From Macrostomum lignano (lineage: Eukaryota): a stretch of 64,000 nt of DNA. Positions 2,726-38,982 of this stretch are shown piece by piece. The DNA lies in assembly GCA_002269645.1 (NCBI GenBank), contig NIVC01000503.1:1-64000 (forward strand), read 5' to 3'. Position 1 is the stretch's first letter. Every line of letters starts with the position of its first letter. The notes below the pieces were generated by a model. It did no database searches. It was given only the letters and a program-made list of their open reading frames with translations, and was not told the origin of the DNA. Both the position numbers and the translations under genes were made by a program.

Positions 2726-5700
2726 ATGCGTCAGTCGAAGACATTGCTACTCTTTGCCATCGGTTTCTGCTGCGTCATGGTCTCCGAAGGTGTGTGATGA
2801 AGTTGATTTTTTGCTCTAAAATAGTTTATCAGCAAAATATATCCAGGTTTTCGTGGCAAAGAAGTACTTTGAATAAATAAGAACTGCTATGGCGAGGCAA
2901 GTCTTCCAGATCCGGCTTGCTTTTTTAATTTGTAGCGAGACGATATCTAAGAAGGCGATGATTAAAGATAAACGATACTTCATTTGCTTTTGCCTTTTGA
3001 AATTATTCTTCTCAGGGCGTCTAATAACTAGAAATCCTATAGGCCTCTTGAATCCCATCTTTGCGTCTCGGGGTTGCCTAAGTTTATACTTGAAACTGTT
3101 TTACCAATGGTCAGGTGATATGCAGAATACGACTTTGCCCCCCCCCACTCCATGTTGCAATGTAGGCGCTTGCAACCGAACTCGCTATGTGCAACACAAC
3201 GGCGTCCTTGTTGTCAACTCGACCATCAGTAGCCAAGTCCTGAATGCCTCCGGAGTGACTTCAGTTGAAGCATGCGCCATGCTGTGCGGAATGAAATCCT
3301 GCTCTGCCGCCGTGTTCTGGAAGAGCAGCGATCTGTGCCAGCTGGTGACGGTGTCTCGCGAGCCGGGATTTGCTGGAAACAACGAATGGAGACTACTGGG
3401 CTCGGAGACTGCTGAGGCGGTGGTGATGAAGCTGGAAAACTTCGAAGAACTGATGAAGCCTCGTATTATAAATGTCACTCGAGTGTTTACAAGTGAGAGT
3501 TCAGCCGCATGTAAATTTGCATAGAGTATCGCACACTTGGTGCACTTTTTCCGTCTTCTTTAAGTCGGCTCGAGCTGGCCACAAGTTCCTAATTTGCGCT
3601 ATCCCATGTTCGTTTTAAATTCAATCCATATGAGCATATTTGAGTCAGCAATAACTAATTGAAACATGCATGGATTTCAGACAATGGAACGGGTCGAATC
3701 GGCTCTGTCCAGCTGGTGACCATCGACATTGCCGGCTGCTACCGGATCCAACTCGCTGGTGCCAAGGGCGGCGACAACACGTATGTCAGTCCTGACGAAC
3801 TCGGCGGCAGGGGAGCTCTGGCTGCTGGAAACGTCAGTTTGTCAGTCGGAGTTCAGCTGTCGATTGTTGTCGGCCAGGCCGGAGGTCCGTCGCAGAGCAG
3901 CGGCTACTCTAGCGGCGGCGGCGGCGGAGGCAGCTTCGTGTACCGGACATCGAACAATGAGCTGCTGATGGCCGCTGGCGGCGGCGGCGGCGCCTCGTAT
4001 GGGTATTCCGGTAAGCATGCGATTTTTATTGTATCTTAACTGAGACGTTTGATAGTTGCTTTTGCCATATTGTCGTATGCAGCTATTCAATAATGTATTT
4101 GTGAAAAGTTTCAAGAAACTGAAGCCGGTAAACAGTTTAGGGAAATGGCGACTTAAGTATCTTTTATCAAGTATATTTTTAAGTAGTCCTTGAACCAGGG
4201 ACGAAACTACACTGAAGAATGCCTCAGTCTACTGGCGCATTTCTATTGTAAAATTGTGAAATCTTCATGGATCTACAGGCCAGAGTTCATTGATGGTGCA
4301 GGCTGCCAGAAATATTGCAGAATTTTTTCTGCTTCACAACACTTTAGCCGAGACAGTCTTCAATTGACGACGATCGCATGCTAAAATTCTTATGAAAGCA
4401 AAAGTTGGCACTTATATATACATTCGGAAAAGTAGAGTGAGCAGTATATGCTCGTAACAACTTTGAAAAAAACAATTTAAAGTTAAAAAGTTTTTGTTGT
4501 TGCAAAACTTTAAGGTACGCTCGTACTCAGCAACATGGTTAAATTTCCAGCCCGAAAACAGTTGTCAACTATTCTCGGATCTCAGTCTTAAGTGACGCAA
4601 TTCACAACACACCTGCGGTTCTCGTCTCAAAGCTGTGGGTGATACAGCTTAGGCTGGTGAGGGGACAGTGGAGAGTTGTGGCTTGAGCTGCATTACAGCT
4701 GCCACTTGTTAACCTCTGGTTTCGTGAAAACGTTAACATGATATCTGCGTATTTAAGGTTGGTTCAGCTATAGAAATTTCTGAGCCTTACCTTCTCCTGC
4801 AGTAGATTGGGTGAATGAGCGATCCCTGCAATGAATGAACTGACTGTAAATGAATTTCAGGTCGACCCGGAGAGGCGGGCACAGGAGGCTCAAACTCGTT
4901 CGGGACTGATGATGTAAGTTCTACAGATTGTTCGATTCGAATTAATTGTTTGCTGCAATTCAATACAGTTGACATCTCAGCAATGGCAAGTAATTAGCTA
5001 AATAAAGCAGATTGGACACTGCAACAGCGCTTCTTTGAATTTCACTTTAGTCGATTTTTGCTGCAATATAGAGCTATGTAGATACTTTTACATCTTTTCA
5101 ACAAAACAATTTGACAATTACCTTCCGAAATTCACAATTGCAAATGAAGCCTGCATAAGTATGCGATGTGTTTTCCCGGATTTTCATTTACACTGTAAAT
5201 GCTTGTCCAGCTATTTTTTAGAAATGCTATGGAATACGTAAGTTATTCGAATCGCATTAGTGTATTGTGAAGACTTCTTTCTCAGACGGTTCTGTTTTGA
5301 CAGCACGGTTGTATGTCGCAGTCCCAGCTGGTGCAGCTGTTTATTTTTATACATACGTACATAGAAACTTTTCAGGTTGAGTTATTTAGAGATTTCCGAT
5401 TTTAATTGAAGTAGCTACACCTGTACATGCTTCTTAGTCTGCGCCGGCACAGATAAAAGGCTTTCGTTCCTTTTCAATCTGGAGCCGTCTAGTAGAGTAG
5501 GTGTAGTGCTGCTACCAGTCCCTTCGGGTCTCAGCCTTCACATGACAAGGGGAAAGCGGCCCACCAATGAAGCCGCTAATGACCGCTAGACAAGAGAACA
5601 AGACACCCAGGCACTAGTGCATCCACTAGTGCCGCTGCACAAAGAGCAAACCAAGAGCTGCAGGCTGAGCCAAGCTGCCCAGCGGCTGCAAATAAGAGCA

Positions 5701-6265
5701 CAAGGGAAACTGCTGACGAGTGAGACACCAAACAGTAATCCTAATGGCTCACTGCATAATCTTAGCGTCATTCCGCTTCAGTTCTACAGAAAGCAAATGG
5801 TTTCAAAAACATACTCGACATCGCTTGCAGGCAGCCCAAACTGGCATCGGAGGCGTTAACGGACAGCCGGGCAGCAACGACCAAAGCACTGCGGCTACCG
5901 ATAGAAACCCTGGAGGCTGCGGAGCCGGCTGGCTTGGCAAGCCTACCGCCGCCCGCACAAGCACCGAATACGGAGACAGAGGCGGCAGTCGCGCCGACGG
6001 CTGGGTCGGCGGCAGAGCCGGAGACACGAGTCCCGCCGACGGCGGCTTCGGCGGTGGCGGAGGCGGAGGCGCGGCCACCACCAAAGGAGCGGCAGGAGCC
6101 GGCGGAGGCTACAGCGGCGGCGGAGCTGGGGCTCGCAGCGACCACGCCGGAGGAGGCGGCGGCTCCTTCTGCGGCGGCAACGGCTGCGTGGCCACAACGA
6201 GTGGCAACACGGGCAGCGAGCACGGCTTCGTGCTGCTGCAAATGATCGGCAGCGGCTGCGCTTAG
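2726..6265 (+). CDS. Secreted PAN/apple + ALK/LTK-type glycine-rich domain protein, paralog A (402 aa, 5 exons)
   Basis: Exons 2726-2789, 3166-3492, 3681-4010, 4861-4913, 5831-6265; all GT-AG, phases compatible, 1209 nt total. Signal peptide MRQSKTLLLFAIGFCCVMVSEG; PAN-like SVEACAMLCGMKSCSAAVFWKSSDLCQL; glycine-rich domain motifs FTNNGTGRIG, YRIQLAGAKGG, LSIVVGQAG, GGGGGSFVY, LMAAGGGGG, GGFGGGGG, GGGYSGGG, GGGGGSF, HGFVLL. No TM segment or kinase. Confidence 0.85.
5495..5734 (-). mobile_element. Internally deleted fragment of the LTR-element family seen at 8215-9081, in intron 4 of paralog A
   Basis: GGGAAACTGCTGACGAGTGAGACACCAAACA (to 5734) resembles the LTR end GGGAGACTGCTGACAAAGTGGGACGCCTAACA (to 9081). 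GTAGTGCTGCTACCAGTCCCTTCGGGTCTCAGCCTTCA (~5504) resembles ~8231. Intron 4 is 917 bp in A and 393 bp in B. Confidence 0.55.
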
Positions 6266-8214
6266 CCGTCGATTTTGAAACGCAACTCATCTTTTCAAGC
6301 GAAAAAATGAAGGTCAAAGGAAAAACTTACTTTCGTTTTTGAGGTTTCAGTGGTTTTAAGGATGCTCTATTGTTTGTTTTTTGGATACAACGTTTATTAT
6401 TTCGAATGTACGTAGTTAGACAAAACTTTTTTTCTCCCTTTAAAAGTGGGGATGTGTGTTTGAATTTCTATCGGACTGATAATCTGTGGGTTTAAGTTAG
6501 CACAATGCTTACATTTACTATATGATTCTAAATACAGGGGCTAGCTTGTCGTGGGATTTCTGCCCCATGAGGTCCATGAAGAACTACTCTCTAGGCACAG
6601 AGTAGCTACTTATCTCGATAATTCATGCAAATATGATTTTCTATCTGAAAGTGTTCGACATGTTTCCTTACCAATTCAACTCTAAAGCTTTTTTGATTGT
6701 TTACTTACTATTGCACTCTCTGGTTAAAGTTTTATTTTTTTCAAAAGGCAGAGCATTTTTTTGACACGTGAAAATCTTAATTCAAGTTCACAATACCCTC
6801 TACCATATAGTTACGGAAATAGCTCCGCGGATTGAAGATTGCTCAGATGAATTGAACGATTGGCCTTGAGCCAACTACATGAACGCTCGTAGTTACATCG
6901 ATTTGAGTAGTCTTCTACAAGCGGAGCTCTGGCCTTTATGAGATGAATTTTGTATTTGCACGCCTACTTTTTAGTTGAACTGGATGCATAATGTGCAGTT
7001 TTATCCAATGTTTAGCAATTATATTGTTTCATTTTGTTTTACTGTGTGACAGTGTCAAAATTCATTGATTTGTTATACTCGTATATACAATCGCATATAC
7101 GAGCCTATTTTGACGAAAAGTCACCGTCCTGAATATTGTTTGGATTACAACTTGTAGTTTTACGTTTATAGAATCTATCGGTCTGTACACTGTTTGTTAT
7201 ATTCTGTCTGAATTTATTTATTCAATTTTCTATTTAAGCTTCTAAATATACCATCGCTTATTTATTCAAGTAGAGCAATTCCTTCGTGAAATATAAAAAA
7301 ACTAAAAATTTTTTTTCTGAAGTATTCTTGTAATCAGTTGTTGGAATACTATATTTAAACAGCTAATATTCAGACCTGGAATATTATTCCACCTAATTCT
7401 CAAATGCCTAGGCAACACTTTTTCCTGCGCTGTTCTTCTGATAATTGTAGTTTAGTGTTGGCTCACATTGCTCGACTTGACAACTGTATTTTGCCTTGCG
7501 AAAAGCAACAAAAATGAGTTTTTTCTGAATCATAAAAACTAATATCCGTTTAACAATTGGAAATCGATCGCTTATGCTTCTAGCAATTAATGGCTGAATT
7601 TTTTTAGAGAAATATCCATTTAGCGGCCACGCAAAAGAACAGCATGCGGGATATCAGTTGTCCTGAAGAACGAAATCGAACTGAAGAAGTTTAGGAGTTA
7701 CGTGTACGAGCCATGAAGAGGCGATGCTTCAAACTTAAAGGGCTTGCAAAGTACATGCATGTATGCAGTTCCACTGAAGCCGTTCATCCCTTGTTTTAGA
7801 CTTACACTTTAGAGTGAAATGCTGCTTTAATAGAATCCAAGCCATGCAAAGCCCTTGCAGCTTCTCCAGGCCAACTGTATGTAGACTCTGTTAGCATCTT
7901 TTTGTTTCTATTACGCTCGTAGTTGCCAAGTGATCAAGAAAATTTCTCACGATCAAACAAAAAATGTCGGCGAAATCGATTCTCCGAGCTAAAACGAGAA
8001 TGCGATAGTCACGTACTTTGTGTTGTACAGCCAAAGACTTGGGCTTCCAGTTGTAAGCGCACAGTTGCTTTTGTTGTACTTGGGGTTTTCTCGGGGTGGC
8101 CTGGTAGGTCTTTGAATCCCACCGCTGCCACCAATGTTGTACCTGTGCTTCTCCTGCTGTACAGCGCAGTGATTTGGGCTCTCCGTCTTCTCACTCGGAA
8201 GCCTTCTTAGCTCT

Positions 8215-10694: not shown

Positions 10695-11220
10695 AGGAAG
10701 TTTTCATTTTTTCAGCACAAAAATTGTTATTGCGTTTGATAGGAGGCAGATCCAAAGTTCATCTTTTGATATGTTATGCCTTTTTATTGCTCTATCGATA
10801 TTTATAAAGCTTTTCGTTCAGAAAATTAGGATTCTATGTTTCCTAACATACGTTTATTCTACGTATATTTCCTGTATCTAAAAATCACAAAAATGCATGA
10901 CACAGCTCCAATATTTGGTTTTATGAACCTATTTTATCATCTCTGTTACAAATATTTGCTACACAGTCGGGTAAGAATGATAAAATAGACTCATGAAACC
11001 AAAGAGCCGAGCCGTGGCATTCTAATGTATTTCAAGCACAAGACACGCGAAAATATACGTAGAATAAAAAATTAACATAGAATCCTAATTTTCTGAACGA
11101 AAAGCTTTATGAATATCGATTGAGCAATAAAAAAGGCACAACATATCAAAAGATGAACACTAGATCTGCCTCCTATCAAACGCAATAACAATTTTTGTGC
11201 TGAAAAAATGAAAACTTCCT
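10695..11220. mobile_element. Foldback/MITE-like element with ~145-bp inverted repeats
   Basis: 10695-10840 (AGGAAGTTTTCATTTT...GGATTCTATGTT) is the near-perfect reverse complement of 11074-11220. A further inner IR lies at ~10852-10870/11052-11070. No clear TSD. Confidence 0.7.
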
Positions 11221-11862
11221 GCATGCTTGCATGTGTAGCTAAAGGCTGAATATCCATCAGATAAATCTGTAACGAAGCCATCAGAATATCTTTTTAAAAA
11301 ACAGTAAATGAGGCCTAGCTATTGCACAAATGCAGATGCAGGAAATTACAAAATGGAATATTGTTTAGGATTATATAATGACCGCATTTACATGTAGTAG
11401 CACCATGGCACCCAATTATGGTAATTTAGATTTAAACGATTGCGATTTGAAAAAGAGAAGAAGAGAGAAAAATATCTGATAGCAAACACTGTGACGATGA
11501 TTTCTGCTAAAACTTGAATAATAGCTTTCCACTTGAATAACAGAATTTTTCGATTGCTAATTGAAGAGAATGTCAAAAGTCCAATTTGGACACTCTTACA
11601 ATTTTCATAGCTGGCAATGGAGGACCGCAGGTGGCGGTGGAGTCTTTGCCATCGTCTTGGAATAATCACGATAAATTCTATCTTATATTTTTTATGTATT
11701 GTTATATTCAGGAAAGCCAGGCAACGTATAGAAAATAATGGAAGAAATTAAACTGGACTCCTTAGTTGCTCCACTTCAACCAGAAATGGAGATCTTGGAG
11801 GTCTTCAACAATCCAAATAGCTCCCCTCATAAGTTTCTTGATGCTGTGCATCCGAGGCGGGG

Positions 11863-12693
11863 TCAGGTCGATGGCGACCGAGGCGAAAGTGTTGCTGGAT
11901 TGCTTAGCAATTGCGGTTTCGGTGGAGGCGGTGGTGGAGGATTCGGCACAGGCTCTAGCGATTGCGGTTTCGGTGGAGGCGGTGGTGGAGGATTCGGCAC
12001 AGGCTCTAGCGATTGCGGTTTCGGTGGAGGCGGTGGTGGAGGATTCGGCACAGGCTCTAGCGATTGCGGTTTCGGTGGAGGCGGTGGTGGAGGATTCGGC
12101 ACAGGCTCTAGCGATTGCGGTTTCGGTGGAGGCGGTGGTGGAGGATTCGGCACAGGCTCTAGCGATTGCGGTTTCGGTGGAGGCGGTGGTGGAGGATTCG
12201 GCACAGGCTCTAGCAATTGCGGTTTCGGTGGAGGCGGTGGTGGAGGATTCGGCACAGGCTCTAGCGATTGCGGTTTCGGTGGAGGCGGTGGTGGAGGATT
12301 CGGCACAGGCTCTAGCGATTGCGGTTTCGGTGGAGGCGATGGTGGAGGATTCGGCACAGGCTCTAGCGATTGCGGTTTCGGTGGAGGCGGTGGTGGAGGA
12401 TTCGGCACAGGCTCTAGCGATTGCGGTTTCGGTGGAGGCGGTGGTGGAGGATTCGGCTCAGGCTCTAGCGATTGCGGTTTCGGTGCAGATGCGGCGGTTA
12501 CAACGGTGGTGGAGTCGGTCTGTGTGGCGGTCAGGCCGGTGGCGGCGGCTCGTTCTGCAGCGGAAATGTTGGTAGAGAGCAGGACCGAGTAGTTCTGCGT
12601 CTGCTGGCCGCTCACCCAAACAGGTGATGACTGCGCTACTATTTTTGCTCGATCCAAGAGTTTGTCCGTTGATTCTTGTTCAAACGTGTTCAT
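11863..12693 (-). CDS. Candidate Thr/Ala-rich + proline-rich repeat protein (276 aa); coding strand ambiguous
   Basis: ATG-started ORF with a GC-rich, coding-like unique 5' part (ERAAATGLTATQTDSTTVVTAASA) then (PKPQSLEPVPNPPPPPP)n. Competing + ORFs at 11738-12592 and 11766-12575. Confidence 0.35.
   Translation of the reverse strand: MNTFEQESTDKLLDRAKIVAQSSPVWVSGQQTQNYSVLLSTNISAAERAAATGLTATQTDSTTVVTAASAPKPQSLEPEPNPPPPPPPKPQSLEPVPNPPPPPPPKPQSLEPVPNPPPSPPPKPQSLEPVPNPPPPPPPKPQSLEPVPNPPPPPPPKPQLLEPVPNPPPPPPPKPQSLEPVPNPPPPPPPKPQSLEPVPNPPPPPPPKPQSLEPVPNPPPPPPPKPQSLEPVPNPPPPPPPKPQSLEPVPNPPPPPPPKPQLLSNPATLSPRSPST
11915..12485. repeat. 51-bp tandem repeat, 11 units, open in several reading frames
   Basis: Unit GGTTTCGGTGGAGGCGGTGGTGGAGGATTCGGCACAGGCTCTAGCGATTGC; only three variant positions across the array. 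Confidence 0.95.
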
Positions 12694-14059
12694 ATTGAAA
12701 GAGAGGCTTCGAAATTAATCCATGTACATATGAAATCTACTTTTACCAACTTCCTAAAACCTTTTGCCTGTTAAGAATTTGTTTTATTGACTCATTTCTC
12801 CATACTAAACTAAAGCAGTAGTGTTGACCGTCTTTGATCGTTATATTTTGCAACGGATTGTGAGTAATTTAACCATCCATAACAGCTTTTATAGTCACGT
12901 GTACTATTGTCTGAAACTGTATCGTAACTTCTACACATAAATTGTATCTGACACATTAATATAATGATGATGATGGATTTGTAATGATCGTACATGACCG
13001 GTAATCAGTGATGACCTTTGAAAATTTAACTTCCATTACCGTACATTCCATTAGCGTACTTTAACTTTTCCGCAAAATTCTAGAACGTTCCATAGCGCAA
13101 TAAAATATCTTTAAACAAATCAGATACAAAATTCATAATATAAATGCACTTCTCCTTTATTTCAGTGAAATAATGAAACTATATTTTATGTAATTGATTT
13201 GCTATTACTACAATTTTCCCGAACATTTCCCGAACAGAATATTTTACGGCTCATCCAGTATAAATTTACAGCAGGTATTCAACGACACCAATGTAACTTT
13301 AATGGAAAATGCCCTTATTTTGTAGTAAACAAGTGAGCCAATGAGCTAAGCTTTATATACCAAAACCCATTGCAATGTCAAAATAGCAGCCTTACATCGC
13401 CAAAGATGCGGCCCTTTCAACTAGCTGAGCGGGTGAAGTGCTTGAGACAAGAGGGTAAGGCAAATCCAGGCCCTTCATGAAAAATTGCTAGCAAGCAGTT
13501 GCAGCTGGGAAAAAGAAAAACTCAATCCGTGAGAATTACCTTAAAGAAGGAAAAGTTCCTGCAATTTAAAATTTCTATCCGTCAGGACTGTATGCAGCAC
13601 TATATGCATCATGATATTAACTTTTGTTAATAGCATTAACGGTTGGTATTTTAATTCTTTCGTTTAAAAAATTTGCATATTTAACCTTGTGACTTAGAGC
13701 TTATACATTAAATATACTTGAAATCTATTAATCTTGTAGACTAAATGGGTACAGTAAAGCAGTGCCAAACTTAGTTATGAATTCAAATTTTGTAGCTGCT
13801 ACATACATAGATTCGAATATCTACCAGAACAATATTTGAAGTTTATTTACAGCTGTACATGTGCTGTGCTTGGGAGCAGAGCTGGAAAATGTCAGTGTTT
13901 CGTTACTTTAGTTTCGCATGCATCAAATAAAGTACCTTATATTAGGAGCTTTGCCTCAGCTTGCTTGTGCTAGAATATTTGTGCCTCAGTCAAATATGGC
14001 TGCATCTGATCTCGTTCTGAGTTCACGCTCAAAAATAAAAAAATCTTGCTCTCTCGAGA

Positions 14060-14262
14060 CAAGGAGTACAGAAAACTCAGGACGCAGAACTTAAACTTGG
14101 TATGACTTTTTACCATTCTAAGATCTGTTATATTGCTAACCTTGAAAATTTATTGTTATGCTAATTAGTTAGACTTTTTACCATAGAGAATGCTTTCATA
14201 CGCGCATTGGAAAATTTCTACAAAGTTTAAGTTCCGCGTCCTGAGTTTTACAGTAGTCCTTG
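14060..14262. mobile_element. MITE (~200 bp) with ~39-bp imperfect TIRs starting CAAGGA(G/C)TAC
   Basis: CAAGGAGTACAGAAAACTCAGGACGCAGAACTTAAACTT vs reverse complement of AAGTTTAAGTTCCGCGTCCTGAGTTTTACAGTAGTCCTTG. Absent from copy A. Abuts the Harbinger MITE. Confidence 0.7.
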
Positions 14263-14454
14263 GGCCGTATGCAGAAAGCCTAGTCCAGACTAGCTAGTCC
14301 GGACTTGGGTAGTTCAGTCTATAGTCTATGGTCTAGCTAGCCTAGTTCTGCTATAGTAGACTGGTCTAACTTTGTATTTCTGCATACCAAATCCAAGTCT
14401 AGACTAGCTTTTCAAGACCGGACTACCCTGGACAGAGCTTTCTGCATACGGCCC
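14262..14454. mobile_element. Harbinger-derived MITE (193 bp)
   Basis: Perfect 18-bp TIR GGGCCGTATGCAGAAAGC...GCTTTCTGCATACGGCCC, the same as the large element. Absent from copy A. No clean TSD. Confidence 0.9.
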
Positions 14455-14793
14455 ATAGGCTTAGCAAATAGCCCGAGAAGCATGAGGACTTGAAGACTAA
14501 TAGTTCAGAAAAGGGGCCGTATGCAGAAAGCTTAGTCCAGACTAGCTAGTCCGGACTGGGTAGTTCTGTCTATGGTCTTAAAATCGGTATGCACAAAAGC
14601 TAGTCGCGACTACCGAGATTCGTCTAGGCTAGACTAGTCTAAGCTAGACAGAGCGCCCAACTTTAGCGCCTAGTTTTAATGATTTTTTTAGTTCTATGGT
14701 CCAAACCCCTGTAAATGCTTTCTGTTTATATACTGGGTCGCTAACTTAACCGTTCCTATACTGGTTCTCTGTGCATATGCGTATGCTTCTGAA

Positions 14794-15071
14794 ATGTCAG
14801 CGACAACAGACTACGAAACAGTTCTTCTTGACATTCTACAAAGACATTCGGCTTCAATTTTGTCGAAGGGCCAAACGCCTGCATGCAGGCAAAGAAGTGC
14901 AAACGCTTGGGAAGACGTAACATCTCAAGTAAACGACCACTTCAAGACCAATTACACGGTCGACCAGGTGCAGAAAAATGGAAAAACATCTTGCAACGAG
15001 TTAAGGAAAAAGGAAAAGGTTAAGGAAATGTCCTCTAATGACTTCAAGGTGTTGGAGGTAATTGGTGAGGA
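14794..15071 (+). pseudogene. 5' part of the Harbinger Myb/SANT-like gene (left arm, truncated)
   Basis: MSATTDYETVLLDILQRH...AWEDVTSQVN..., nearly identical to the minus-strand copy starting at 17731. Broken by a frameshift (A5 at 14974-14978), a filler-containing deletion, and fusion to inverted transposase at AGGA 15068-15071. Confidence 0.85.
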
Positions 15072-15993
15072 AGATCATCATGAGGATCGTTCTGGGTGCG
15101 AGCGAAATTGTGTAGCTTACAACAGGTCACAATTAATGTTGGTACACGGTCTAGTGGTACGCGTAGGATGCTACCAACGCAGTTGAAACGGCGCTTTAAA
15201 ATTCCGAATGTCTGCTCGATTCGAACTCTCGCTCGGCTGAGTTCGCGATTGAATATTCTCTGCCGGCCATCTGGGTTTTGATATGGAGTGAGTAGAAAAT
15301 CGCAGAGTCGGTATCCAGAATCTCCGACAAGATAGCCCTCCCATTGGGCGTCTAGAAGCGATCCAAAAAAAAACTGTTGCGAAATATTCTCGAGTCATGG
15401 ACTGAACCAGGCCATTGAGCAGTTATTTCGAGAAAGAAGTATCTCGCATCGCAGACTGCTTGGACGTTAATAGAGTGGTAGTTTTTACGATTAATGAATT
15501 CATCTGGAAAGTTTTCATTAGATGGCCTTTGAATTCGTACATGCGTACAGTCGATAGCACCGATTACATCTGCCAGTTGACCAATTTGATTAAACCCCGT
15601 TGACACTCGCGTCCGCTCAACACCTGGATCTGGATAGCGGATGTTATTCAAGCGGAGATTCAGTATCCTGACCACTCCCCAGTAGCAGCGGGACATGGTG
15701 CTTTGGTCGATACCTCCAAGAGCAGACAGGTTCTGCTGAAAGCTTCCAGTGCCGAGATAAGATAGTGTCAGGCACAGCTGTAGCATGGGAGTCAGGCTTC
15801 TGTTACGCATTGTCGTCCGTTCGAGATCTGTCTCGACAAGCTCCACAAGTGATAGAAGTGATCTAGGTTCGAACCGAAACAGTCTTTTAATTTCAACCTC
15901 CGAGAATTGTTGAAGTGGCTCCAACCGATCACGAAATATGCGTTGTCGACGGAGGTCTCGCTGAACTAAATCTATCGCAACCAAAATATTCAT
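15068..15993 (-). pseudogene. Harbinger (HARBI1-like) DDE transposase, N-terminus to near C-terminus, C-terminally truncated
   Basis: MNILVAIDLVQRDLRRQRIFRDR...LCLTLSYLGTGSFQ...GAIDCTHVRI...NRKNYHSINVQAVCD...WPGSVHDSRIF. Frameshift at the 9-nt run 15365-15373; downstream frame GDSGY...IEQTFGILKRRF. Confidence 0.9.
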
Positions 15994-16040
15994 TTCTTTC
16001 AATCGTCTAAGGGCGAAGGTAATGCAAAATTAGCTATCAA

Positions 16041-16781
16041 GGGAGTGGTCAGGATACTGAATCTCCGCTTGAATAACATCCGCTACCCAGAGCCAGGTGT
16101 TGAGCGGACGCGAGTGTCAACGGGGTTTAATCAAATTGGTCAACTGGCAGATGTAATCGGTGCTATCGACTGTACGCATGTACGAATTCAAAGGCCATCT
16201 AATGAAAACTTTCCAGATGAATTCATTAATCGTAAAAACTACCACTCTATTAACGTCCAAGCAGTCTGCGATGCGAGATACTTCTTTCTCGAAATAACTG
16301 CTCAATGGCCTGGTTCAGTCCATGACTCGAGAATATTTCGCAACAGTTTTTTTTTGGATCGCTTCTAGACGCCCAATGGGAGGGCTATCTTGTCGGAGAT
16401 TCTGGATACCGACTCTGCGATTTTCTACTCACTCCATATCAAAACCCAGATGGCCGGCAGAGAATATTCAATCGCGAACTCAGCCGAGCGAAAGTTCGAA
16501 TCGAGCAGACATTCGGAATTTTAAAGCGCCGTTTCAACTGCGTTGGCAGCATCCTACTACGCGTACCACTAGACCGTGTACCAACATTAATTGTGACCTG
16601 CTGTAAGCTACACAATTTCGCTCGCACCCAGAACGATCCTCATGATGATCTTCCTGAGCATCTCGCAGCAGAATGGGATGATCCGGAGCCAGAACTAGTT
16701 AATTACAACGCCAATCAACGTAAACAGCAAAGACAAAGGAGAGGCCGTCAACTTCGAGACCAAATCAGCAATGCAATGTAA
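16041..16781 (+). pseudogene. Harbinger transposase, central to C-terminal part (right arm, 5'-truncated)
   Basis: GVVRILNLR...GAIDCTH...HDSRIF, then after T9 (16347-16355) LDAQWEGYLVGDSGYRLCDFLLTPY...IEQTFGILKRRF...CCKLHNF...stop at 16781. DDE residues are intact. Confidence 0.9.
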
Positions 16782-17009
16782 TATATTTATTGATTAACAC
16801 AAAGTATGACAACGTTATGCGAAATTAAGAAAACCTAGGGAACCCATTTTGACCATGTGCAATTGCTAACCTGAACCATCTAATCATTTAATAGTAAATA
16901 GTTACCGTATTAACAGTTATTCACTGTAACAGCTTCAGTTTTTGTAGTGAAATATTGTCAGTAGCTCATACGCGACTGCTTTTATCCGAGCTAAAAATAA
17001 ACCGAGTAC

Positions 17010-17731
17010 TCAAAAAAGACCAAAAAACTTTTGCTCGGAGTCTTTTGTCTTGTCCTTGGCACATCGTAACAGATCTCGAATCTCCTTCAAAACGTCGATC
17101 CTCTCCCGTTCTAGGGCTAGCTTCTCTTCCTTGAGTTTTAGCTTCTTTTGCTCAAACTCGATGAGCTCGTCAGAAAAGTTTTTTTCTTTGACTTTCTTCT
17201 TTCGCTGATGGCTGACTTCGCCCGAAGCCAGTGATTGTCGAGACGGATTCACAGGGACAGCATTGTCTGACTCCGATTGAGTGGTAGAGCCGCTAATTTG
17301 CAACGTCGATTGATCTTGTTGACTAGCGTTCGCGGATGCCCCAGATGGTGCCTGTGTCCTGGATGCATCAAGATGTTCCTTTTCAGTCAGGCCAACGCTC
17401 AATCCAAATGACAACGGTGTTAGGCGCGGGTTGTCCTCACCAATTACCTCCAACACCTTGAAGTCATTAGAGGACATTTTTGGAGCTGGCCCGCCTCCAG
17501 TCTTCTTCGTAGTTTTTTCCTTAACTCGTTGCAAGATGTTTTTCCATTTTTCTGCACCTGGTCGACCGTGTAATTGGTCTTGAAGTGGTCGTTTACTTGA
17601 GATGTTACGTCTTCCCAAGCGTTTGCCCTTCTTTGCCTGCATGCAGGCGTTTGGCCCTTCGACAAAATTGAAGCCGAATGTCTTTGTAGAATGTCAAGAA
17701 GAACTGTTTCGTAGTCTGTTGTCGCTGACAT
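17010..17731 (-). CDS. Harbinger Myb/SANT-like DNA-binding protein (240 aa if one A is restored at 17547-17551)
   Basis: AWEDVTSQVNDHFKTNYTVDQVQK(K)WKNILQRVKEK..KTGGGP..., with a C-terminal coiled coil EFEQKKLKLKEEKLALERERIDVLKEI. Convergent with the transposase, as known for Harbinger elements. Confidence 0.8.
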
Positions 17732-18603
17732 TTCAGAAGTATACGCATATGCAAAGAGAACCAGTATAGGAACGGTTAAGTTAGCGACCCAGTATATTAA
17801 CAGAAAGCATTTACAGGGGTTTGGGCCATAGAACTAAAAAAATCATTAAAACTAGGCGCTAAAGTTGGGCGCTCTGTCTAGCTTAGACTAGTCTAGCCTA
17901 GACGAATCTCGGTAGTCGCGACTAGCTTTTGTGCATACCGATTTTAAGACCATAGACAGAACTACCCAGTCCGGACTAGCTAGTCTGGACTAAGCTTTCT
18001 GCATACGGCCCTTTGTCTAGTCCAGACTAACTAGTCAAAGCTTTTATGCATACCAAAGTAAGACTAAACTACCATAGACAGAACTAGGGTAGTTTTTTCT
18101 ATGCTAGACCGGTCTAAATTTGTGTTTCTGCATACCAAATCCAAGTCCAGACTAGCTTTTCAAGACCGGACTACCCTAGACAGAGCTTTCTGCATACGGC
18201 CCAAGGTCTTACTATAAGAAGAAGCGTCATCGGATTCAAAAGGTGAAGTAGGACGAAAAGGAAGAAAATCTAGTAGAAAAGGGAAACTGAGGGAAAAGCC
18301 CTAACCAAACAAAAAAAACTTTTTGACAATTAGAAAGTCTGAGAGTCAGAGAAGAATCCCTCTCTGGATGGACGTAAAAATTCAGTTTAAATGTACTGCA
18401 GAGACATGACCTGAATGGGGACTGGGGACAGAGACACTGAATCTTACTTTGCGCACCTTGACAACGGGACAGCAAATAAAACAAGTGAAGGTCAGTTGAG
18501 AAAATTTAAAACAGTAAAGCTTTGGGAGTGGGATACAGCTCCTCATTACAATTCTCACTCACAATTTCAGTACTGAGAGTCGGCAAACACACAACTTTAG
18601 GAG

Positions 18604-21600
18604 ATGCGTCAGCCACAGGTATTGCTACTCTTCGCCATCGGTTTCTGCTGCATCATGGTCTCGGAAGGTGCGTATTGAAGTTGACTTTTTGCTCCTAACT
18701 AGTTAATTAATTGGAAAAGCATATCCAAGTTTTGACCTGAAAAAGAAGGACTTCAAATAGAAGGAGAACTAATCGATATGGCCAGCTTTTCCGATTGGCT
18801 TTGCTTGTTTCATTTTTAGCAGGGGCTACCTGAGGAGGACGATATTTAACAATCAACAATTTTGGTCGTATTAGTTTCGGAGACTAAATCTCAAAGCGAA
18901 AATTATATTGAAGACATCTAACGACGAGGCCCCTTGAGTTAAACGTTTCACCGCTGGACAGGTGATAAGCTGGCCCCCTCCATAACAATTGCCATGCAGG
19001 CGCTTGCAACCGAACTCGCTATGTGCAACACAACGGCGTCCTTGTTGTCAACTCGACCGTCAGTAGCCAAGTCCTGAATGCCACCGGAGTGACTTCAGTT
19101 GAAGCATGCGCCATGCTGTGCGGAATGAAATCCTGCTCTGCCGCCGTGTTCTGGAAGAGCAGCGGTCTGTGCCAGCTGGTGGCGGTGTCTCGCGAGCCGG
19201 GATTTGCTGGAAACAACGAATGGAGACTACTGGGCTCGGAGACTGCTGACGCGGTGGTGATGAAGCTGGAAAACTTCGAAGAACTGATGAAGCCTCGTAT
19301 TATAAATGTCACTCGAGTGTTTACAAGTGAGAGTTCAGCCGCATGCATAATTGCATAGATTATCGCACACTTGGTGCACTTTTTCCCTCTTCCTTAGGTC
19401 GGCTCCAGCTGGCCACAAGTCACTACGATTGTTTTGTTTTTGCTTTTCCTAATTTCCGCTTTTCCATATCAAGGACTACTCAAGTACATTATATATACTA
19501 AAGTTGTCCTTGTCCCGTGTTCGTTTTAAATTCAATCCATATAAGCATATTTGAGTCAGCGATAGCTAATTGAAACATGCATGGATTTCAGACAATGGAA
19601 CGGGTCGAATCGGCTCTGTCCAGCTGGTGACCATCGACATTGCCGGCTGCTACCGAATCGAACTCGCTGGTGCCAAGGGCGGCGACAACACGTATGTCAG
19701 TCCTGACAAACTCGGCGGCAAGGGAGCTCTGGCTGCTGGCAACTTCAGTTTGTCAGTCGGAGTTCAGCTGTCGATTGTTGTCGGCCAGGCCGGAGGCCCA
19801 TCGCAGAGCAGCAGCTACTCTAGCGGCGGCGGCGGCGGGGGCAGCTTCGTGTACCGGACATCGGACAATGGGCTGCTGATGGCCGCTGGCGGCGGCGGGG
19901 GCGCCTCGTATGGGTATTCCGGTAAGCATGCGATTTTTATTGTATCTTAACTGAGACGTTTGGTAGTTGCTTTTGCCATATTGTCGTATGCAGCTATTCA
20001 ATAATGTATTTGTCAAAAGTTTCAAGAAACTGAAGCCGGTAAACAGTTTAGGGAAATGGCGACTTAAGTATCTTTTATCAAGTATATTTTTAAGTAGTCC
20101 CTGAACCAGGGACGAAACTACACTGAAGAATGTCTCAGTCTATCGACGCATTTCTATTGTAAAATTGTGAAATCTTCATGGATCTACAGGCCAGAGTTCA
20201 TTGATGGTGCAGGCTGCCAGAAGTATTGCAGAATTTTTTCTGCTTCACAACACTTTAGCCGAGACAGTCTTCAATTAACGACGATCGCATGCTAAAATTC
20301 TTTTTATGAAAGCAAAAGTTGGCACTTATACTAACTGAAAAGTAAAGTGAGCAGTATAACAACTTCTAAAAAATAAAAAAGTTAAACATTTTTCTTGTTG
20401 CAGAACTTTAATATACTCAGCAACATGTTAAAATTTCCAGCCCGAAAACAGTTGTCAACTTTTCTCGGATCTCAGTCTTAAGTAACGCAATTCACAAAAC
20501 GCCTGCGGTTCTCGTCTTAAAGCTGTGGGTGATGCAGCTTAGGCTGGTGAGGTGACAGTGGAGAGTTATTGGCTAGAGTTAGATTACAGCTGCCGACCTC
20601 TGGTTTTGTGAAAAACTTTAACATATTGCTGAATGTATCTGCGTATTTGAGGGTGGTTAATTTAGCTATGGGAGATTTCAGAGCATTTCTTCCCACTCCA
20701 GTAGATTTGGGTAAATGAGCAATCGCTGCTTAAATTCATTAGGCTGTATGCAGAAAGCTTAGTCCAGACTAGCCAGTCCGGACTTGGGTAGTTCAGTCTA
20801 TAGTCTATGGTCCAGCTACCCTAGTTCTGTCTATAGTAGACCGGTCTAACTTTGCGTTTCTGGATACAAAATCCAAGTCCAGACTAGCTTTTCGAGACCG
20901 GACTACCCTAGACAGAGCTTTCTGCATACGGCCCAAAGAATGAACTGACTGTAAATGAATTTCAGGTCGACCCGGAGAGGCGGGCACAGGAGGCTCAAAC
21001 TCGGTCGGGACTAACTCTGTAAGCCAGCTTGGCCGTTCAGCAGATGTAGAAACTTTTATGTAAAAACTTTAGTCTTTTTTAACAAAAGAATTCACAATTG
21101 CATTTAAAGCCTGCAGGAGTATACGTGCATGCGTTTTCCAGAATCTTCATTCAAACGCTTGCCCAGCTACTTTTTAGAAATGCTACGGAATACGTTAGTC
21201 ATTATAATCACTTCAGTGTATATTGAAGAAGCTTTTCCCTTCTGAAGAAGTTCTGTTTCGAGAGCACAGCTGTATGTCGCATGTTGCGCTCTTCATTTTT
21301 CCTATCTCATTTTTTCCTGTAATGTTCGGAATCAGTAAAAAAGTTTAGCGTCCTTCTGCTTTAGTCTAAACAAAGCAAATGGTGCAAAAGCATAACCTAC
21401 ATGGCTTGCAGGCAGCCCAAACTGGCATCGGAGGCGTTAACGGACAGCCGGGCAGCAACGACCAAAGCACTGCGGCTACCGATAGAAACCCTGGAGGCTG
21501 CGGAGCCGGCTGGCTTGGCAAGCCTACCGCCGCCCGCACAAGCACCCAATACGGAGACAGAGGCGGCAGTCGCGCCGACGGCTGGGTCGGCGGCAGAGCC

Positions 21601-21846
21601 GGAGACACGAGTCCCGCCGACGGCGGCTTCGGCGGTGGCGGAGGCGGAGGCGCGGCCACCACCAAAGGAGCGGCAGGAGCCGGCGGAGGCTACAGCGGCG
21701 GCGGAGCTGGGGCTCGCAGCGACCACGCCGGAGGAGGCGGCGGCTCCTTCTGCGGCGGCAACGGCTGCGTGGCCACAACGGGTGGCAACACGGGCAGCGA
21801 GCACGGCTTCGTGATGCTGCAAATGATCGGCAGCGGCTGCGCTTAG
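18604..21846 (+). CDS. Secreted PAN/apple + ALK/LTK-type glycine-rich domain protein, paralog B (402 aa, 5 exons)
   Basis: Exons 18604-18667, 19000-19326, 19592-19921, 20966-21018, 21412-21846; each exon is the same length and phase as in paralog A and the frame is open. About 20 amino-acid differences from A. Confidence 0.85.
20741..20934. mobile_element. Harbinger-derived MITE in intron 3 of paralog B
   Basis: AGGCTGTATGCAGAAAGC...GCTTTCTGCATACGGCCC; body matches the 14262-14454 MITE. Absent at the equivalent site in A (~4825). Confidence 0.9.
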
Positions 21847-23924
21847 TCGTCGGTTTTTTAACTTTTTAAGGGAAAAAATGAAGGTCAAAAGAAAAACTTA
21901 CTGTGATTTTAGAGTTTTCAGTGGTTTTAAGGATGCTCTGTTGTTTGTTTTCTTGGATACAACGTTTATTATATCAAATGCACGTAGGTAGCTCGTAGTT
22001 AGACACTACTTATTTTTTCCACCCATTAAAAGTGCTGAGCTGGGATAAAGTAGCTCGACGGTGACCTGTTTGAGTTTCTTGTCGGACTGATGATCTGTGG
22101 GTTCGGTTTTGAACAATGGCTACATTTACTACGATTCTAAATCCAGGGGCTAGCTTGTGGTGGGATTTCTGCCCATCAGGTCCATGAAGGACTACTCTCT
22201 AGGCACAGAGTAGCTACTTATCTCAATAATTCATGCAAATAAGGTTTTTTGTATCTCTAACTTGTATTTCTAAATCAATTACTTTTTTGTTTTACCGTTT
22301 CACTGTGTCAAAATTCAATGCCTAATATTGTACGTATAATCGCATATACGAGCCTATTTTAAAGATAAGTCACGTCCTGAATATTGTTTAGATTAATAAC
22401 TTTAGTTTTTTGACGTTCTGTGAATAGCTAGTACTATTTGATATTTTCTGTATGAATTAATTTAATCAATTTTCTATTTAAGTTCCAAATATACTGGACC
22501 GATTTCTTTTTTTTAAGTAGGGCAACTCTTTTCTGAAATATAGCTCATACATGTAGTTGGACTAAATTTTTTCCTGAAGTATCTTGTAATCAGTTGGTGC
22601 AATCCCTAATTAGACAGCTAATATTCAGTTACAGACTTCGAATATTATTTCTTTTAATTCTACTAATGCAGAGGCAAAACTATTTATCTGTTGTTCTTCT
22701 TAAGTGTTGCCTCAACTAGATAACCTTTATTCCGCCATGCGAAAAGCTACAAAAATGTATGTTTTTTTTAATCAATTAAACTAATATCCGTTAACACCTG
22801 GAAATCGATCGCTTATTCTTCTGTCAATTAATAGTTTGTAATAATAAACCACATTCTGACGCTTGATCAGACGGTAGGTAGTATAGGTGGTCCAGACAAA
22901 CTGACTGAAGATTTACTGACTTTGCTTTAACTTTGACTTTAAAGCTGTTAAATAGAAAATATATTGAAATTATTGAGTACGTACATTTATATGGGATACC
23001 TCTATAGTATATATAACTATAGCTTGTAAATAAAAGCGTGAATTTACAGAACCCAAAACCATAGCAGCTTGAAATTGAATTAGGCTTACGCTCCAACGAA
23101 TGATGTAATAAAGACACATCTATTGATATATACCTGGCGTACTTAACTTGTCGCTAAGTTTACAGAAAATCTTTCTAACCTTATAAAAAACTTATAATAC
23201 CCTTCCTTGTATTTATCTATTCTTTTGCTTTAGGCTTTTCCAGATCGAGTCAGCTCAGCTAGTTTTTACCTTTCATATGCTAGGCCAGGAAAAATTACCT
23301 CAACTTTTTGGCGACAAAGCCTTGTGTCGATTAAATATTCATGATCAACACTGGGTAAATTTGTTAATTCCACAGCTTGTTCCACTCTAAAACTGGCTAT
23401 TCTGCTTTGCGCCAATCTTGCTTGAAGTAGACAGTTGAGTTGGGCCATCAAGCTGCAGGGATGCTTTGCAGTAAAGAGAGAAAGATAGGAGGTTGATAGA
23501 AAAAACTCAAACTTAATGGTTATGGAAGAGCGACGTAGACATCACGTGGTATCGGTAAGCAACCTTTCAATGTACGACTGCATGAGGTGAAAATTTACGA
23601 AAAACTCAACTAATGATAAATAATAGAAGTACACAAGCGCAAACAGGTGCTATGAGTAGTGTACGTTGCATCATATCGAAATAGCAAAAAATCTGCTGCA
23701 TCATTGAATTCTGTTACATCATAGTTGTCAAAAGTAAGAAAGTCAGACAAGATCGCTTTGATATGGTATTACACAACAGTATCAATTACTTTGATAGGTG
23801 TTATGACTATGAAATATGAGAAAGTCTTCATTGTTTAATATTCAACACAATAATTTAAACTTGCTAAATGTTCTCATAGTTAACTTGACTGTCATCAGAC
23901 AAATCCTAAAAGGTGACCCAAAGT

Positions 23925-26316: not shown

Positions 26317-27637
26317 TCATTCATCCTGCGATTGATTCATCCATTCGAGAAATTCTCGATAATTGATTCTACCGTCGTAATCCTTGTCGCTGTTGGCGAA
26401 GAACTTGTCCACATCTGCGGCACCAAACATTGAGCCGGCGCCCATCTCCTGGATGGCCTGCAAAGAGGAGGTACGGCTCGTAACAGGCAGGTAACTGGCG
26501 ATGAGCAGCCATTTCATCATTGACCAGGTGAGTTACTGGGAATACATCATCCCTGACCAAGTGAGTTACTGGAACTACATCATCCCTGACCAGGTGAGTT
26601 ACTGGGACTACATCATCCCTGACCAGGTGAGTCACTGGGACTTCATCATCCCTGACCAGATGAGTCACTGGAACTACATCATCCCTGACCAGGTGAGTCA
26701 CTGGGAATACATCATCCCTGACCAGGTGAGTCACTGGGACTACATCATCCCTGACCAGGTGAGTCACTGGGACTTCATCATCCCTGACCAGGTGAGTCAC
26801 TGGGACTTCATCATCCCTGACCAGGTGAGTCACTGGGACTTCATCGTCCTTGACCAGGTGAGTCACCGCATTCGTGTCACCCTGACCAGCTGAGCCAAAA
26901 CTAATCTACAGCAGGAGCATTAGCAAAAGCTGATCAGACCTGCAGCAGCTCCTGCTTGGTGATGAAACCGTTTCCATCTTTGTCGATCTTTTCAAACAGA
27001 TGCCTCCATTGGCTGTAGCGGAACACAATGGCTCTGAAGTTCGCGAAGGCAGATTAAAGGTCATTTTAAAGGACAACTAAATGCACTTGAAAAAATTTCA
27101 TGGAATAAAATATCATAAAAGTATTCCGTATAGCTGAAATTACATTTGATCATCAAAAAATATTTATAAATCAAGCTACTCACTGCCTTTGAGCTCGAGG
27201 AATCTCATTCAAAGTTTTTTGATACTCATCCAGCGTGATTTTGCCGTCGCGATTGCGATCAAACAGACGAAGATATTTCTAAATTTATAGTTAAAAAATT
27301 AGTAAGAGTGAGTTGTGAGATAACAATATTAATGCAGAAAATGATAGAAAATCTGTCAGATTTTGCGAGATTAAGAAGCTTAATCTTCTTCTCAATAAGA
27401 CCCCTTAAAATCGTTTCCCAAGTACTCGTATATAATTAATTCTTTTAATCCTAGCAGTGTTCAATTCGTCATGGAAATTTTTCGGGGTCCTTCACAAAAA
27501 TTTCTCATTACCTGCACAAATAGTTCGTTGTGCTGTCGCTTGTATAGGTACTCTCTCAGCTCATCAGCTGTGATAACACCGGCGCCTTTCTTGTCGATCA
27601 TCCTGAACGCTTTGAGTAGTTCCTCCTCGGTTGTCAT
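26317..27637 (-). CDS. Calmodulin-like 4-EF-hand calcium-binding protein (144 aa, 4 exons); resembles the flatworm 16-kDa/SME16 type
   Basis: Exons 27637-27512, 27278-27184, 27012-26940, 26457-26317 (435 nt, phases consistent). Loops DKKGAGVITADE, DRNRDGKITLDE, DKDGNGFITKQE, DKDYDGRINYRE. In-frame TGA shortly upstream of the ATG. Confidence 0.85.
26518..26890. repeat. 33-bp intronic minisatellite, 11 units
   Basis: Unit GACCAGGTGAGTCACTGGGACTTCATCATCCCT within intron 26458-26939 of the EF-hand gene. Confidence 0.95.
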
Positions 27638-28723
27638 GCTCAGCCGCTTCGGACTATGTCAAATGTCACGCTAGTATCCAATGGATGAAAATAAGCTACA
27701 TCTTTATGATGGGGCGGAGCGCAAGCGGCTTTTATGGCTCTGGGATGGGTTGGTGTGCTTAGAGAGGGAAGGAAACTGGGAGTTACAGAAAGCGGAGAGG
27801 ACTGTGGTTGGGACGAGGAGGATGAGGGAACAGAACCACCTGAGGCCGTGAGTACGTTCTAGTGGGATAACCCTTTGCGACGAGTCTACTTCAACTCGTA
27901 CTTGTTTTGCTGTGACGATTTATCGTAAGAGGAAGTCATGAGTTGAGAATCACAGAAGAGATTTTCGGTCCCTTTTGCAGCCTTTTTGCTTGATAAGTCA
28001 CGCCATGCAATTGCATGCATACAGTCAGGTTAGGGCCAGGATACTATCAAATTATTTTAATTGAGGCTTTCTAATCGATTGGCGCTCTTTAGCCCCATGC
28101 AAAGATGGTTTAATGAGGGCTTTTTAGTCATCTGGCAATCGCCAATCATCAAAACACGTTCTTTTCTCCTTTGTCTGCTCAAAGATGCACAGATAATGGC
28201 ACGCAATATGCAAATTGTTGCTACAAAAAACAATTGCAGGCCTTTTGCTTTTAGATTTTTTCATACAAGTATATTTTCGTTTGTCGAACGTCTGTTTTTT
28301 TGTTTGAAAAATCGCATAAACTAACAAAAACCATTTTTGATCGGTATTCAGTATTTTTTATTCAAACAGTTTAATTGCTCGATAAAATGTATTTATTCGG
28401 CTAACGGCTATATACTGTACACAATTAGTCAATTATGAATATCTATTCTAGCTCTGTTACGACGTAAATTTGATGTCAGCAAGCATTTCGTACAGGTATC
28501 ACAGAAAAAAATCGAAATAGATAAACAAAAATATAATAAATCTAACTTCCTACGGGGCTTACTGTAGCTACGGATTAACATTTTCTAGGAATTTTAAACA
28601 AAAATTTGAAACGAGATGGAACAGAATTTTACGCAATAATTGCTGTAGTAAGAGTACAGTGAGTAAGGTAAGAGGAGTGAGATTCGCTAATAGGCAACCG
28701 TGTCAATCAATTTGAATACCTGT

Positions 28724-29117
28724 GGGGTAGCGAGCTGTAGGGTAGGGTGCTGTAGGGTAGGGTGCTGTAGGGTAGGAGGGTGCTGTAGGGTAGGGTGCTG
28801 TAGGGTAGGGTGCTGTAGGATAGTGTGCTGTAGGGTAGGGTGCTGTAGGGTAGGAGGGTGCTGTAGGGTAGGAGGGTGCTGTAGGGTAGGGTGCTGTAGG
28901 GTAGGGTGCTGTAGGGTAGGGTGCTGTAGGGTAGGGTGCTGTAGGGTGGCGTGCTTAGAGTAGAGTGCTGTAGGGTAGGGTTGCTGTAGCGTAGGGTGCT
29001 GTAGGGTAGGGTGCTGTAGGGTAGGGTGCTGTAGGGTAGGGTGCTGTAGGGTAGGGTGCTGTAGGGTAGGGTGCTGTAGGATATGATGCTGTAGGCTGCT
29101 GTGCGGTAGGGTGCTGT
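28724..29117. repeat. G-rich 15/18-bp minisatellite (GTGCTGTAGGGTAGG)n, ~25 units
   Basis: Directly visible tandem array, with occasional extra AGG. Confidence 0.95.
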
Positions 29118-31279: not shown

Positions 31280-31784
<505 letters not shown>

Positions 31785-34434: not shown

Positions 34435-34513
34435 GTCATAATATGTTTACATTGAGTATCAATGAGTACATATGAGTACATTGAGTAGTTCATCAAAATT
34501 AATCATTGTGCAG

Positions 34514-37598: not shown

Positions 37599-37957
<359 letters not shown>

Positions 37958-38665: not shown

Positions 38666-38721
<56 letters not shown>

Positions 38722-38722
38722 T

Positions 38723-38786
<64 letters not shown>

Positions 38787-38814
38787 CTAGTTAGTTAGTT
38801 AGTTAGTTAGTTAT

Positions 38815-38868
<54 letters not shown>

Positions 38869-38869
38869 G

Positions 38870-38903
<34 letters not shown>

Positions 38904-38929
38904 CAGTTAGTTAGTTAGTTAGTTTAGTC

Positions 38930-38980: not shown

Positions 38981-38982
<2 letters not shown>

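Follow-up and report, generated by a model that had tools for sequence, protein, structure and literature searches.

We analysed a 64,000-nucleotide (nt) stretch of DNA from Macrostomum lignano (contig NIVC01000503.1 of assembly GCA_002269645.1, positions 1 to 64,000; hereafter the window), which carries at 14514-18202 a PIF/Harbinger-type DNA transposon containing two pairs of long inverted arms. We refer to its constituents as E1, the outer host copy, and E2, an inverted second copy lying within it. Parts of the same two genes are found in each: Pfam searches placed a DDE_Tnp_4 transposase on the - strand from 15993 (E1) and on the + strand from 16041 (E2), and a Myb_DNA-bind_5 domain on the + strand from 14794 (E1) and on the - strand from 17731 (E2), with both Myb 5' ends facing inward. 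A 1-nt transposase frameshift is common to both arms (A9 at 15365-15373 in E1, T9 at 16347-16355 in E2), and a second frameshift, in an A-run of the Myb gene, is likewise common to both (~14973-14978 in E1, ~17548-17552 in E2); the intact relative P0001 reads NSFLFGS where the window has NSFF^GS. The frameshifts could be homopolymer assembly errors, and their identity in both arms leaves this unsettled. Only after their correction were the Pfam models fully covered, PF13359 over positions 1-158 of 158 (123 bits) by the transposase and PF13873 over positions 10-77 of 78 (34.9 bits) by the Myb protein. The catalytic triad is conserved relative to HARBI1-like proteins, as D148 (AIDCTH), D224 (LVGDSGY) and E259 (RIEQTF). 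Thus, the locus has the defining features of the PIF/Harbinger superfamily: a DDE_Tnp_4 transposase with a D-D-E triad, a Myb/SANT-like second open reading frame (ORF), and short terminal inverted repeats (TIRs) with a 3-bp target-site duplication (TSD). The duplicated AAG differs from the classical TWA target. Myb and transposase genes are convergent, the same arrangement as in L002, a more distant complete relative of 2,540 bp with GGGCC TIRs, an ATA TSD and no internal palindrome. A homology search with the frame-corrected Myb protein gave no match at E <= 1e-5, an Rfam scan of the whole window gave no family at gathering score, and a literature search for Harbinger elements in Macrostomum returned nothing relevant.

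Boundaries and arms of the element

Comparison of the window with itself revealed that two segments, ~170-7600 (copy I) and ~12780-22830 (copy II), form a colinear, tandem-like segmental duplication and are 70-93% identical. The element lies in copy II, which reads TCAGAA-AAG-[14514..18202]-AAG-GTCTTAC, whereas the paralogous site in copy I (~2318-2330) reads CCAGAA-AAG-GTTTTAC, with AAG only once. Because copy I is empty at the homologous site, we conclude that 14514-18202 is one insertion flanked by a 3-bp TSD, AAG, at 14511-14513 and 18203-18205. Its flanks are colinear with copy I, and the composite contains no host DNA. We also considered the pure palindrome, 14514-18011, as the inserted unit, but it would be bordered by AAG and TTT, which is no TSD, and the empty site fits 14514-18202. 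The 17-nt TIR, GGGCCGTATGCAGAAAG, has six exact occurrences in the window, compared with 0.11 occurrences (at up to three mismatches) expected from shuffled sequences. The outer 17-bp TIRs of 14514-18202 are perfect, and the composite is therefore mobilisable in principle, presumably in trans. A further TIR-like site at 54447-54463, with three mismatches and without MITE-like (miniature inverted-repeat transposable element) similarity around it, was judged a chance match. A PAN-domain exon is also present in copies I and II of the duplication, at 2889-3521 and 18975-19337, respectively, with 91% amino acid (aa) identity.

A repeat search recovered inverted arms of 517 nt (15163-15679 and 16041-16557) and 505 nt (14507-15011 and 17514-18018), each at 99%, together with the pieces that connect them; repeats of this length (more than 500 nt) and identity (99%) greatly exceed what chance would produce. 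Gapped alignment extended these to two pairs of arms. The outer arms, 14514-15071 and 18011-17434, differ by five substitutions and one 20-bp indel block (15012-15026 versus 17480-17513), and the inner arms, 15068-15679 and 16655-16041, by five substitutions (for example at 15628/16092 and 15228/16492) and a 3-bp indel (16558-16560). Both pairs are hence ~99% complementary, with a total of 10 substitutions and three indels (778 bp, 20 bp and 3 bp). Between the inner arms is a loop of 361 nt (15680-16040) that is found only in E1 and holds transposase codons 1-105 and 47 nt upstream of them. A 778-bp bulge (16656-17433) is found only in E2 and holds the transposase C-terminus, a 228-bp convergent intergenic region and the 3' half of Myb. 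In the undeleted arm the bulge is bounded by a 4-bp microhomology, TCCT, at 16652-16655 and 17434-17437, which is the reason that the two arm pairs overlap by 4 bp at 15068-15071. The corresponding junction in E1 (15068-15071) carries the same microhomology, AGGA on this strand and TCCT on the other, within the sequence GGTGAGGAAGATC at 15064-15076. Relative to E2, and judged by this alignment, the left arm simply carries a 778-bp deletion with a 4-bp microhomology.

The 20-bp deletion in E1 (15012-15026) offsets the common Myb frameshift and so opens a chimeric ORF of 130 aa (window 14794-15186). This ORF (14794-15183) runs from the Myb start across the 778-bp junction into antisense transposase, probably by coincidence.

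Two copies in one element and their origin

The nearest intact transposase that we detected, P0001 (350 aa, 86% identity), comes from another dataset and lies on a 1,527-bp contig, L001, which starts at the family TIR. Bases 2-193 of L001 align to 18201->18012 of the window (77.6%), and bases 254-1190 align to 16004->15069 (83.6% nucleotide identity), such that the window is colinear with L001 across the junction once 16041-18011 is removed. Since this removal restores an ordinary element, we conclude that the locus consists of E1 with E2 inserted into it. The alternative that 18012-18202 is an unrelated truncated MITE was rejected: this segment is 88-92% identical to the right halves of the neighbouring MITEs described below, and its colinear counterpart in the intact relative is the right end, immediately upstream of the transposase.

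By this comparison E1 is shown to comprise 14514-16040 and 18012-18202, a deletion derivative that lacks 778 bp spanning the 3' ends of both genes. Its left part (14514-16040, + strand) contains TIR-L (14514-14530), a 280-bp 5' region, the 5' half of Myb, the deletion junction, the transposase in antisense and the 47 bp that precede its ATG. Three-frame translation identified only the 5' part of the Myb/SANT-like gene (PF13873; 14794-15071, + strand), and the DDE_Tnp_4 transposase (15068-15993, - strand; ATG at 15993-15991) extends over codons 1-~309, its C-terminus having been lost through the 778-bp deletion. The right end of E1 (18012-18202, - strand) comprises the subterminal region and TIR-R (18186-18202), which would normally lie directly upstream of the transposase gene. 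E2 (16041-18011, - strand), an inverted second copy of 1,971 bp, is inserted 47 bp upstream of the E1 transposase ATG and thereby cuts the E1 transposase off from its own 5' region. It ends at 18011 with an exact TIR-L terminus, a perfect 17-mer (17995-18011, - strand) that is the third TIR of the element, and is broken at 16041 in transposase codon ~105. The E2 transposase accordingly spans codons ~105-350 (16041-16781, + strand; stop TAA at 16779-16781), with an R->K replacement and a 3-bp insertion as private changes, while the E2 Myb/SANT-like gene, recognised by Pfam and by translation, is full length at ~240 aa (17010-17731, - strand) with the same frameshift as in E1.

The original prediction, made from the letters of this DNA, had described a single element folded back on itself. 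Our alignments reproduced its arms and their near-perfect complementarity almost base for base, as well as the sizes of its loop (361) and bulge (778), and the paralogous empty site lends independent support to its proposal of one TSD-bounded element. Both arms do retain the TIR, the upstream region and the start of Myb, pointing inward. However, the single fold-back has to be revised to a host, E1, interrupted by an inverted E2 truncated at one end, with 18012-18202 as the right end of E1. Nor do the two arms together reconstruct a DDE protein of 351 aa, since both genes are frameshifted in both arms; a protein of 350/351 aa is obtained only by repairing the frameshift in each. As read here, the 351-aa transposase exists conceptually only, as E1 codons 1-~309 and E2 codons ~105-350, both frameshifted, and we infer that the locus encodes no functional protein.

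How did the palindrome arise? We favour, with reasonable though not full confidence, the explanation that the locus is a real, non-autonomous PIF/Harbinger composite whose palindrome resulted incidentally when one family member inserted into another. E1 and E2, which share both frameshifts, come from the same, already frameshifted lineage. E2, a sibling copy, would have inserted into E1 in reverse orientation by ordinary transposition, creating a long palindrome around a short centre. Asymmetric deletion at this centre would then have removed the right end of E2, namely TIR-R, ~264 bp of 5' region and codons 1-105, perhaps with a few bases of E1, leaving the present 361-nt loop. Central deletions are known for long palindromes with short spacers. 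Polarising the changes with L001 assigned two derived substitutions to E1, and three plus the 3-bp insertion to E2.

Local hopping may have been the source of E2. Two 193-bp MITEs, MITE A (14262-14454) and MITE C (20741-20934), carry the same 17-nt TIR and consist of the left 66 bp and the right ~128 bp of the element. Copy I lacks all three insertions, MITE A, MITE C and E1 (the empty site of MITE C is at ~4829), so that Harbinger-family insertions are confined to copy II. Within 6.7 kb of copy II there are four insertion events of the family, against none in its paralog, which suggests local hopping. A further relative, P0108 (UniRef, an M. lignano gene model), contains an internally deleted transposase of the same family, 98% identical, fused to an ankyrin-repeat gene, and hence represents another deletion derivative in or beside a host gene model.

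Several observations weigh against our favoured account. There is no TSD around E2 (CAA | TTT), leaving normal transposition unproven, although this is expected because one end of E2 is deleted. L001 is ~25-30 nt longer in the region of the junction, reflecting either a subfamily indel or lost E1 sequence. With a single genomic copy to compare, the existence elsewhere of E1-type elements (with the 778-bp deletion but no E2) and the derivation of E2 from a separate copy rather than from E1 itself are presumed. Finally, the promoter and poly(A) use considered below is deduced at the level of consensus motifs.

It is appreciably less probable that the locus arose in a single replicative event, in which an element's TIR-L end, taken from the element itself or from its copy on the sister chromatid, was joined into the right subterminal region of that element. 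Inward re-copying would have aborted in transposase codon ~105 and been end-joined to 16040, and the 778-bp deletion, small indels and substitutions would have followed later. Alternative transposition with re-replication would be a comparable process, as would fold-back template switching in the course of gap repair. E2 does have the expected 'fractured' signature, with one precise terminus and one arbitrary end lacking microhomology (16040/16041), as in the maize Ac composites (bioRxiv 10.1101/2020.01.07.897926), and derived changes occur in both arms, as expected for decay after a duplication. However, three later indels, including the 778-bp deletion, would be required at only ~1% divergence. 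E2 is thus a fractured inverted fragment of the kind that alternative transposition produces, but the inverted duplication or re-replication of flanking host DNA that marks the maize sister-chromatid cases is not seen; the flanks here are neither duplicated nor inverted and are colinear with copy I. The two frameshifts common to both arms, which might suggest a single event, fit two sibling copies of one defective subfamily equally well.

Long palindromes are a known class of artefact in long-read assemblies. A missed-adapter palindromic read, or a mis-join of two transposon copies, is nonetheless very improbable here, since the arms, differing by 10 substitutions (transitions and transversions) and by 778-bp, 20-bp and 3-bp indels, are not two strands of one molecule, and moreover each arm has derived changes of its own, the centre is asymmetric (361 nt), the end of the palindrome coincides precisely with a transposon terminus, copy I is colinear with both flanks, the TSD is clean and the 16040/16041 junction has no common sequence for an assembler to mis-join. 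Seven ORFs of the window, among them the 130-aa ORF across the junction (14794-15183), had no exact match in a collection that apparently lacks the ORFs of this genome, which makes this negative uninformative.

Predicted transcripts and possible silencing

A TATA-like sequence, TTTATATAC, lies at 14726-14734, upstream of the E1 Myb gene. From the left Myb start to the far TIR, the + strand has a single canonical poly(A) signal, an AATAAA at 16996; a - strand AATAAA lies at 16791-16786, and both are inside the 228-bp intergenic region of the bulge. RNA from the + strand could start at the E1 Myb promoter, or might arise by host read-through towards the PAN-domain exon (18975-19337), which is conserved, lies 770 bp downstream on the + strand and makes such read-through conceivable. 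A transcript from the E1 promoter that ends via the 16996 signal would be ~2.25 kb long and would pass through transposase codons ~106-309 first in antisense and then in sense. It would form a near-perfect stem of 612 bp of double-stranded RNA (dsRNA), a potential substrate for RNA interference (RNAi). From the E2 Myb promoter, the default product would be an ordinary Myb mRNA that carries the frameshift but forms no hairpin, and dsRNA against Myb and the TIRs would be expected only with read-through past 16996. RNAfold predicted a minimum free energy of -1458.7 kcal/mol, compared with ~-607 for shuffled sequences, with 607 inner-arm pairs; read-through added 295 predicted outer-stem pairs. 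The predicted stems (inner, 612 bp; outer, ~560 bp) give the locus the long inverted repeat with a loop that is typical of hairpin RNA (hpRNA) loci.

These predictions bear on two further proposals of the original prediction. Inward-facing promoters had been described: the Myb 5' ends do face inward, but the promoters are deduced rather than observed. Transcription from either promoter had been proposed to yield dsRNA against both transposase and Myb. Because of the poly(A) signals at 16996 and 16791-16786, we would instead expect the default left transcript to contain only the inner, transposase stem, and the right transcript to contain none.

The locus could in theory be a functioning mobile 'killer', whose hairpin transcript gives rise to small interfering RNAs (siRNAs) or PIWI-interacting RNAs (piRNAs) that silence the transposase and Myb genes of the family in trans, but we regard this as improbable. 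Such a function is plausible because both dsRNA-triggered RNAi and piRNAs exist in Macrostomum: in M. lignano, the probable host, RNAi can be induced by soaking in dsRNA (PMC11075559), and transposable elements are targeted by piRNAs that bear a ping-pong signature (PMC4604429). It would also be consistent with the perfect outer TIRs and clean TSD, with a dsRNA stem that is thermodynamically overwhelming in the predicted fold, with putative internal promoters that point inward and a host exon downstream on the + strand, and with arms that keep ~99% identity. However, the poly(A) signals would normally stop left transcripts before the outer, Myb/TIR stem and right transcripts before any stem. 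In the collections searched, which did not include the host genome itself, we also detected no intact target at least 98% identical; the copies at this level that were seen (E1, E2 and the deleted copy in P0108) are all defective, and the nearest intact transposase, P0001, is 86% identical. Mu killer (Muk), the maize locus to which the original prediction had likened this one, acts via plant RNA-directed DNA methylation, the pathway that plant killers use and for which the present host would need an equivalent. Even for Muk the long-hairpin model is disputed (PMC3440606). We give marginally less credence still to the locus being a mobile hairpin, that is, a TIR-bounded Harbinger derivative whose transcript would yield siRNAs, or prime piRNAs, against the transposase of its own family. 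Our judgement is that this rearrangement is most likely neutral, perhaps supplying some small RNAs, and is no proven master silencer.

Surroundings, known systems and significance

Directly adjoining MITE A is a second fold-back element of ~200 bp (14060-14262), unrelated to the Harbinger family, with arms at 14072-14110 and 14211-14249 that are 87% complementary; the copy I paralog differs in sequence there. The site of MITE C (20729-20741) has no clean TSD, and its 11-bp filler, TTAAATTCATT, resembles an inverted copy of the adjacent flank, AATGAATGAAC; this filler may be a repair footprint. Elsewhere in the window, a 526-bp stretch at 10695-11220 is its own reverse complement at ~80% identity and may represent an ancient palindrome or else a fold-back element. 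The - strand at 41646-54302 carries an axonemal dynein heavy-chain gene (DNAH6-like) whose uninterrupted exons are very long (ORFs of 871, 1067 and 486 aa); the best named matches of the 871-aa ORF, from molluscs and a cestode, are 60-66% identical. Minisatellites with periods of 51, 33, 15, 85 and 37 bp are located at 11905-12485, 26514-26866, 28720-29095, 33481-35949 and 62497-63913, respectively; the 51-bp array falls within long ORFs of both strands (11738-12693). Two (TGTC)n arrays ~6 kb apart (31280-31790 and 37599-37957) flank the 85-bp satellite, and a (GTTA)n array is separate (38666-38981).

Muk is an inverted duplication with two same-end TIRs, two partial gene copies and an arm of ~1.3 kb (PMC3440606). 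The present locus is similarly a natural inverted duplication of a partly deleted autonomous DNA transposon, with arms of ~1.2-1.3 kb, each carrying the TIR of the same side and the 5' portion of a transposon gene (PMC3440606). In common with the Mu and Ac killer loci, it has part of an autonomous transposon, with a TIR and the 5' portion of a gene, duplicated in inverted orientation. This structural half of the likeness to Mu killer, a TSD-bounded inverted duplication, stands; the single-element anatomy and the intact protein that accompanied it do not, and dsRNA against Myb would need read-through. Muk is a Mutator derivative in a plant, whereas the present locus is a PIF/Harbinger element in an animal; its hairpin covers parts of both element genes, with a 778-bp bulge, and it keeps a normal right end and TSD, so that it is potentially mobile. 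Muk was defined genetically, by transcription, siRNAs and dominant heritable silencing, whereas the present locus is defined by its sequence.

The Ac 'killer' composites p1-ww-id1 and p1-ww-id4 resemble E2 in having one precise terminus and one arbitrary breakpoint (bioRxiv 10.1101/2020.01.07.897926). Ac killers are inverted repeats of 'fractured' 5' ends, transcribed from their own or a flanking promoter (bioRxiv 10.1101/2020.01.07.897926). They differ in arising together with large inverted duplications of flanking host DNA, through sister-chromatid transposition and re-replication, whereas the flanks here are unrearranged and the arms differ by ~1% plus three indels. In animals, hairpin-derived endogenous siRNA (endo-siRNA) loci are already known (PMC5392987, PMC10317233). 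The locus resembles such hpRNA/endo-siRNA loci, for example those of Drosophila, in being a long genomic inverted repeat with a loop, which would be a Dicer substrate if transcribed (PMC5392987, PMC10317233). The Drosophila loci, however, are defined by sequenced 21-nt siRNAs and by dependence on Dicer-2 and AGO2, and mostly target genes or drivers, whereas the likeness of this locus lies in its DNA structure. The resemblance also extends to an ordinary nested same-family insertion with a deletion: the host is interrupted in its subterminal region, the insert ends at an exact TIR, insertions cluster locally, and the microhomology-mediated internal deletion is typical of non-autonomous derivatives. 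The difference from a simple nested pair is that the insert is inverted and truncated, and it is for this reason that a near-perfect hairpin of 1.17 kb has resulted.

The locus is therefore a well-resolved further instance of an already known type of rearrangement, and without small-RNA support it would count among the numerous transposon rearrangements, nested or inverted, that a repeat-rich genome is expected to contain. Outside plants, how a newly active DNA transposon is first recognised by the genome is poorly documented. Here we describe a fully sequenced animal example in which all junctions are resolved, which was never achieved for Muk or the Ac composites (PMC3440606; bioRxiv 10.1101/2020.01.07.897926), and which brings its own internal empty-site control. 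Should siRNAs restricted to the stems be present in existing Macrostomum small-RNA libraries, the locus would offer a tractable test case. Were the silencing function to prove true, improbable as we consider it, the locus would be an animal counterpart of Mu killer, able to transpose and spread silencing, and could be tested in a flatworm that supports both RNAi and transgenesis.

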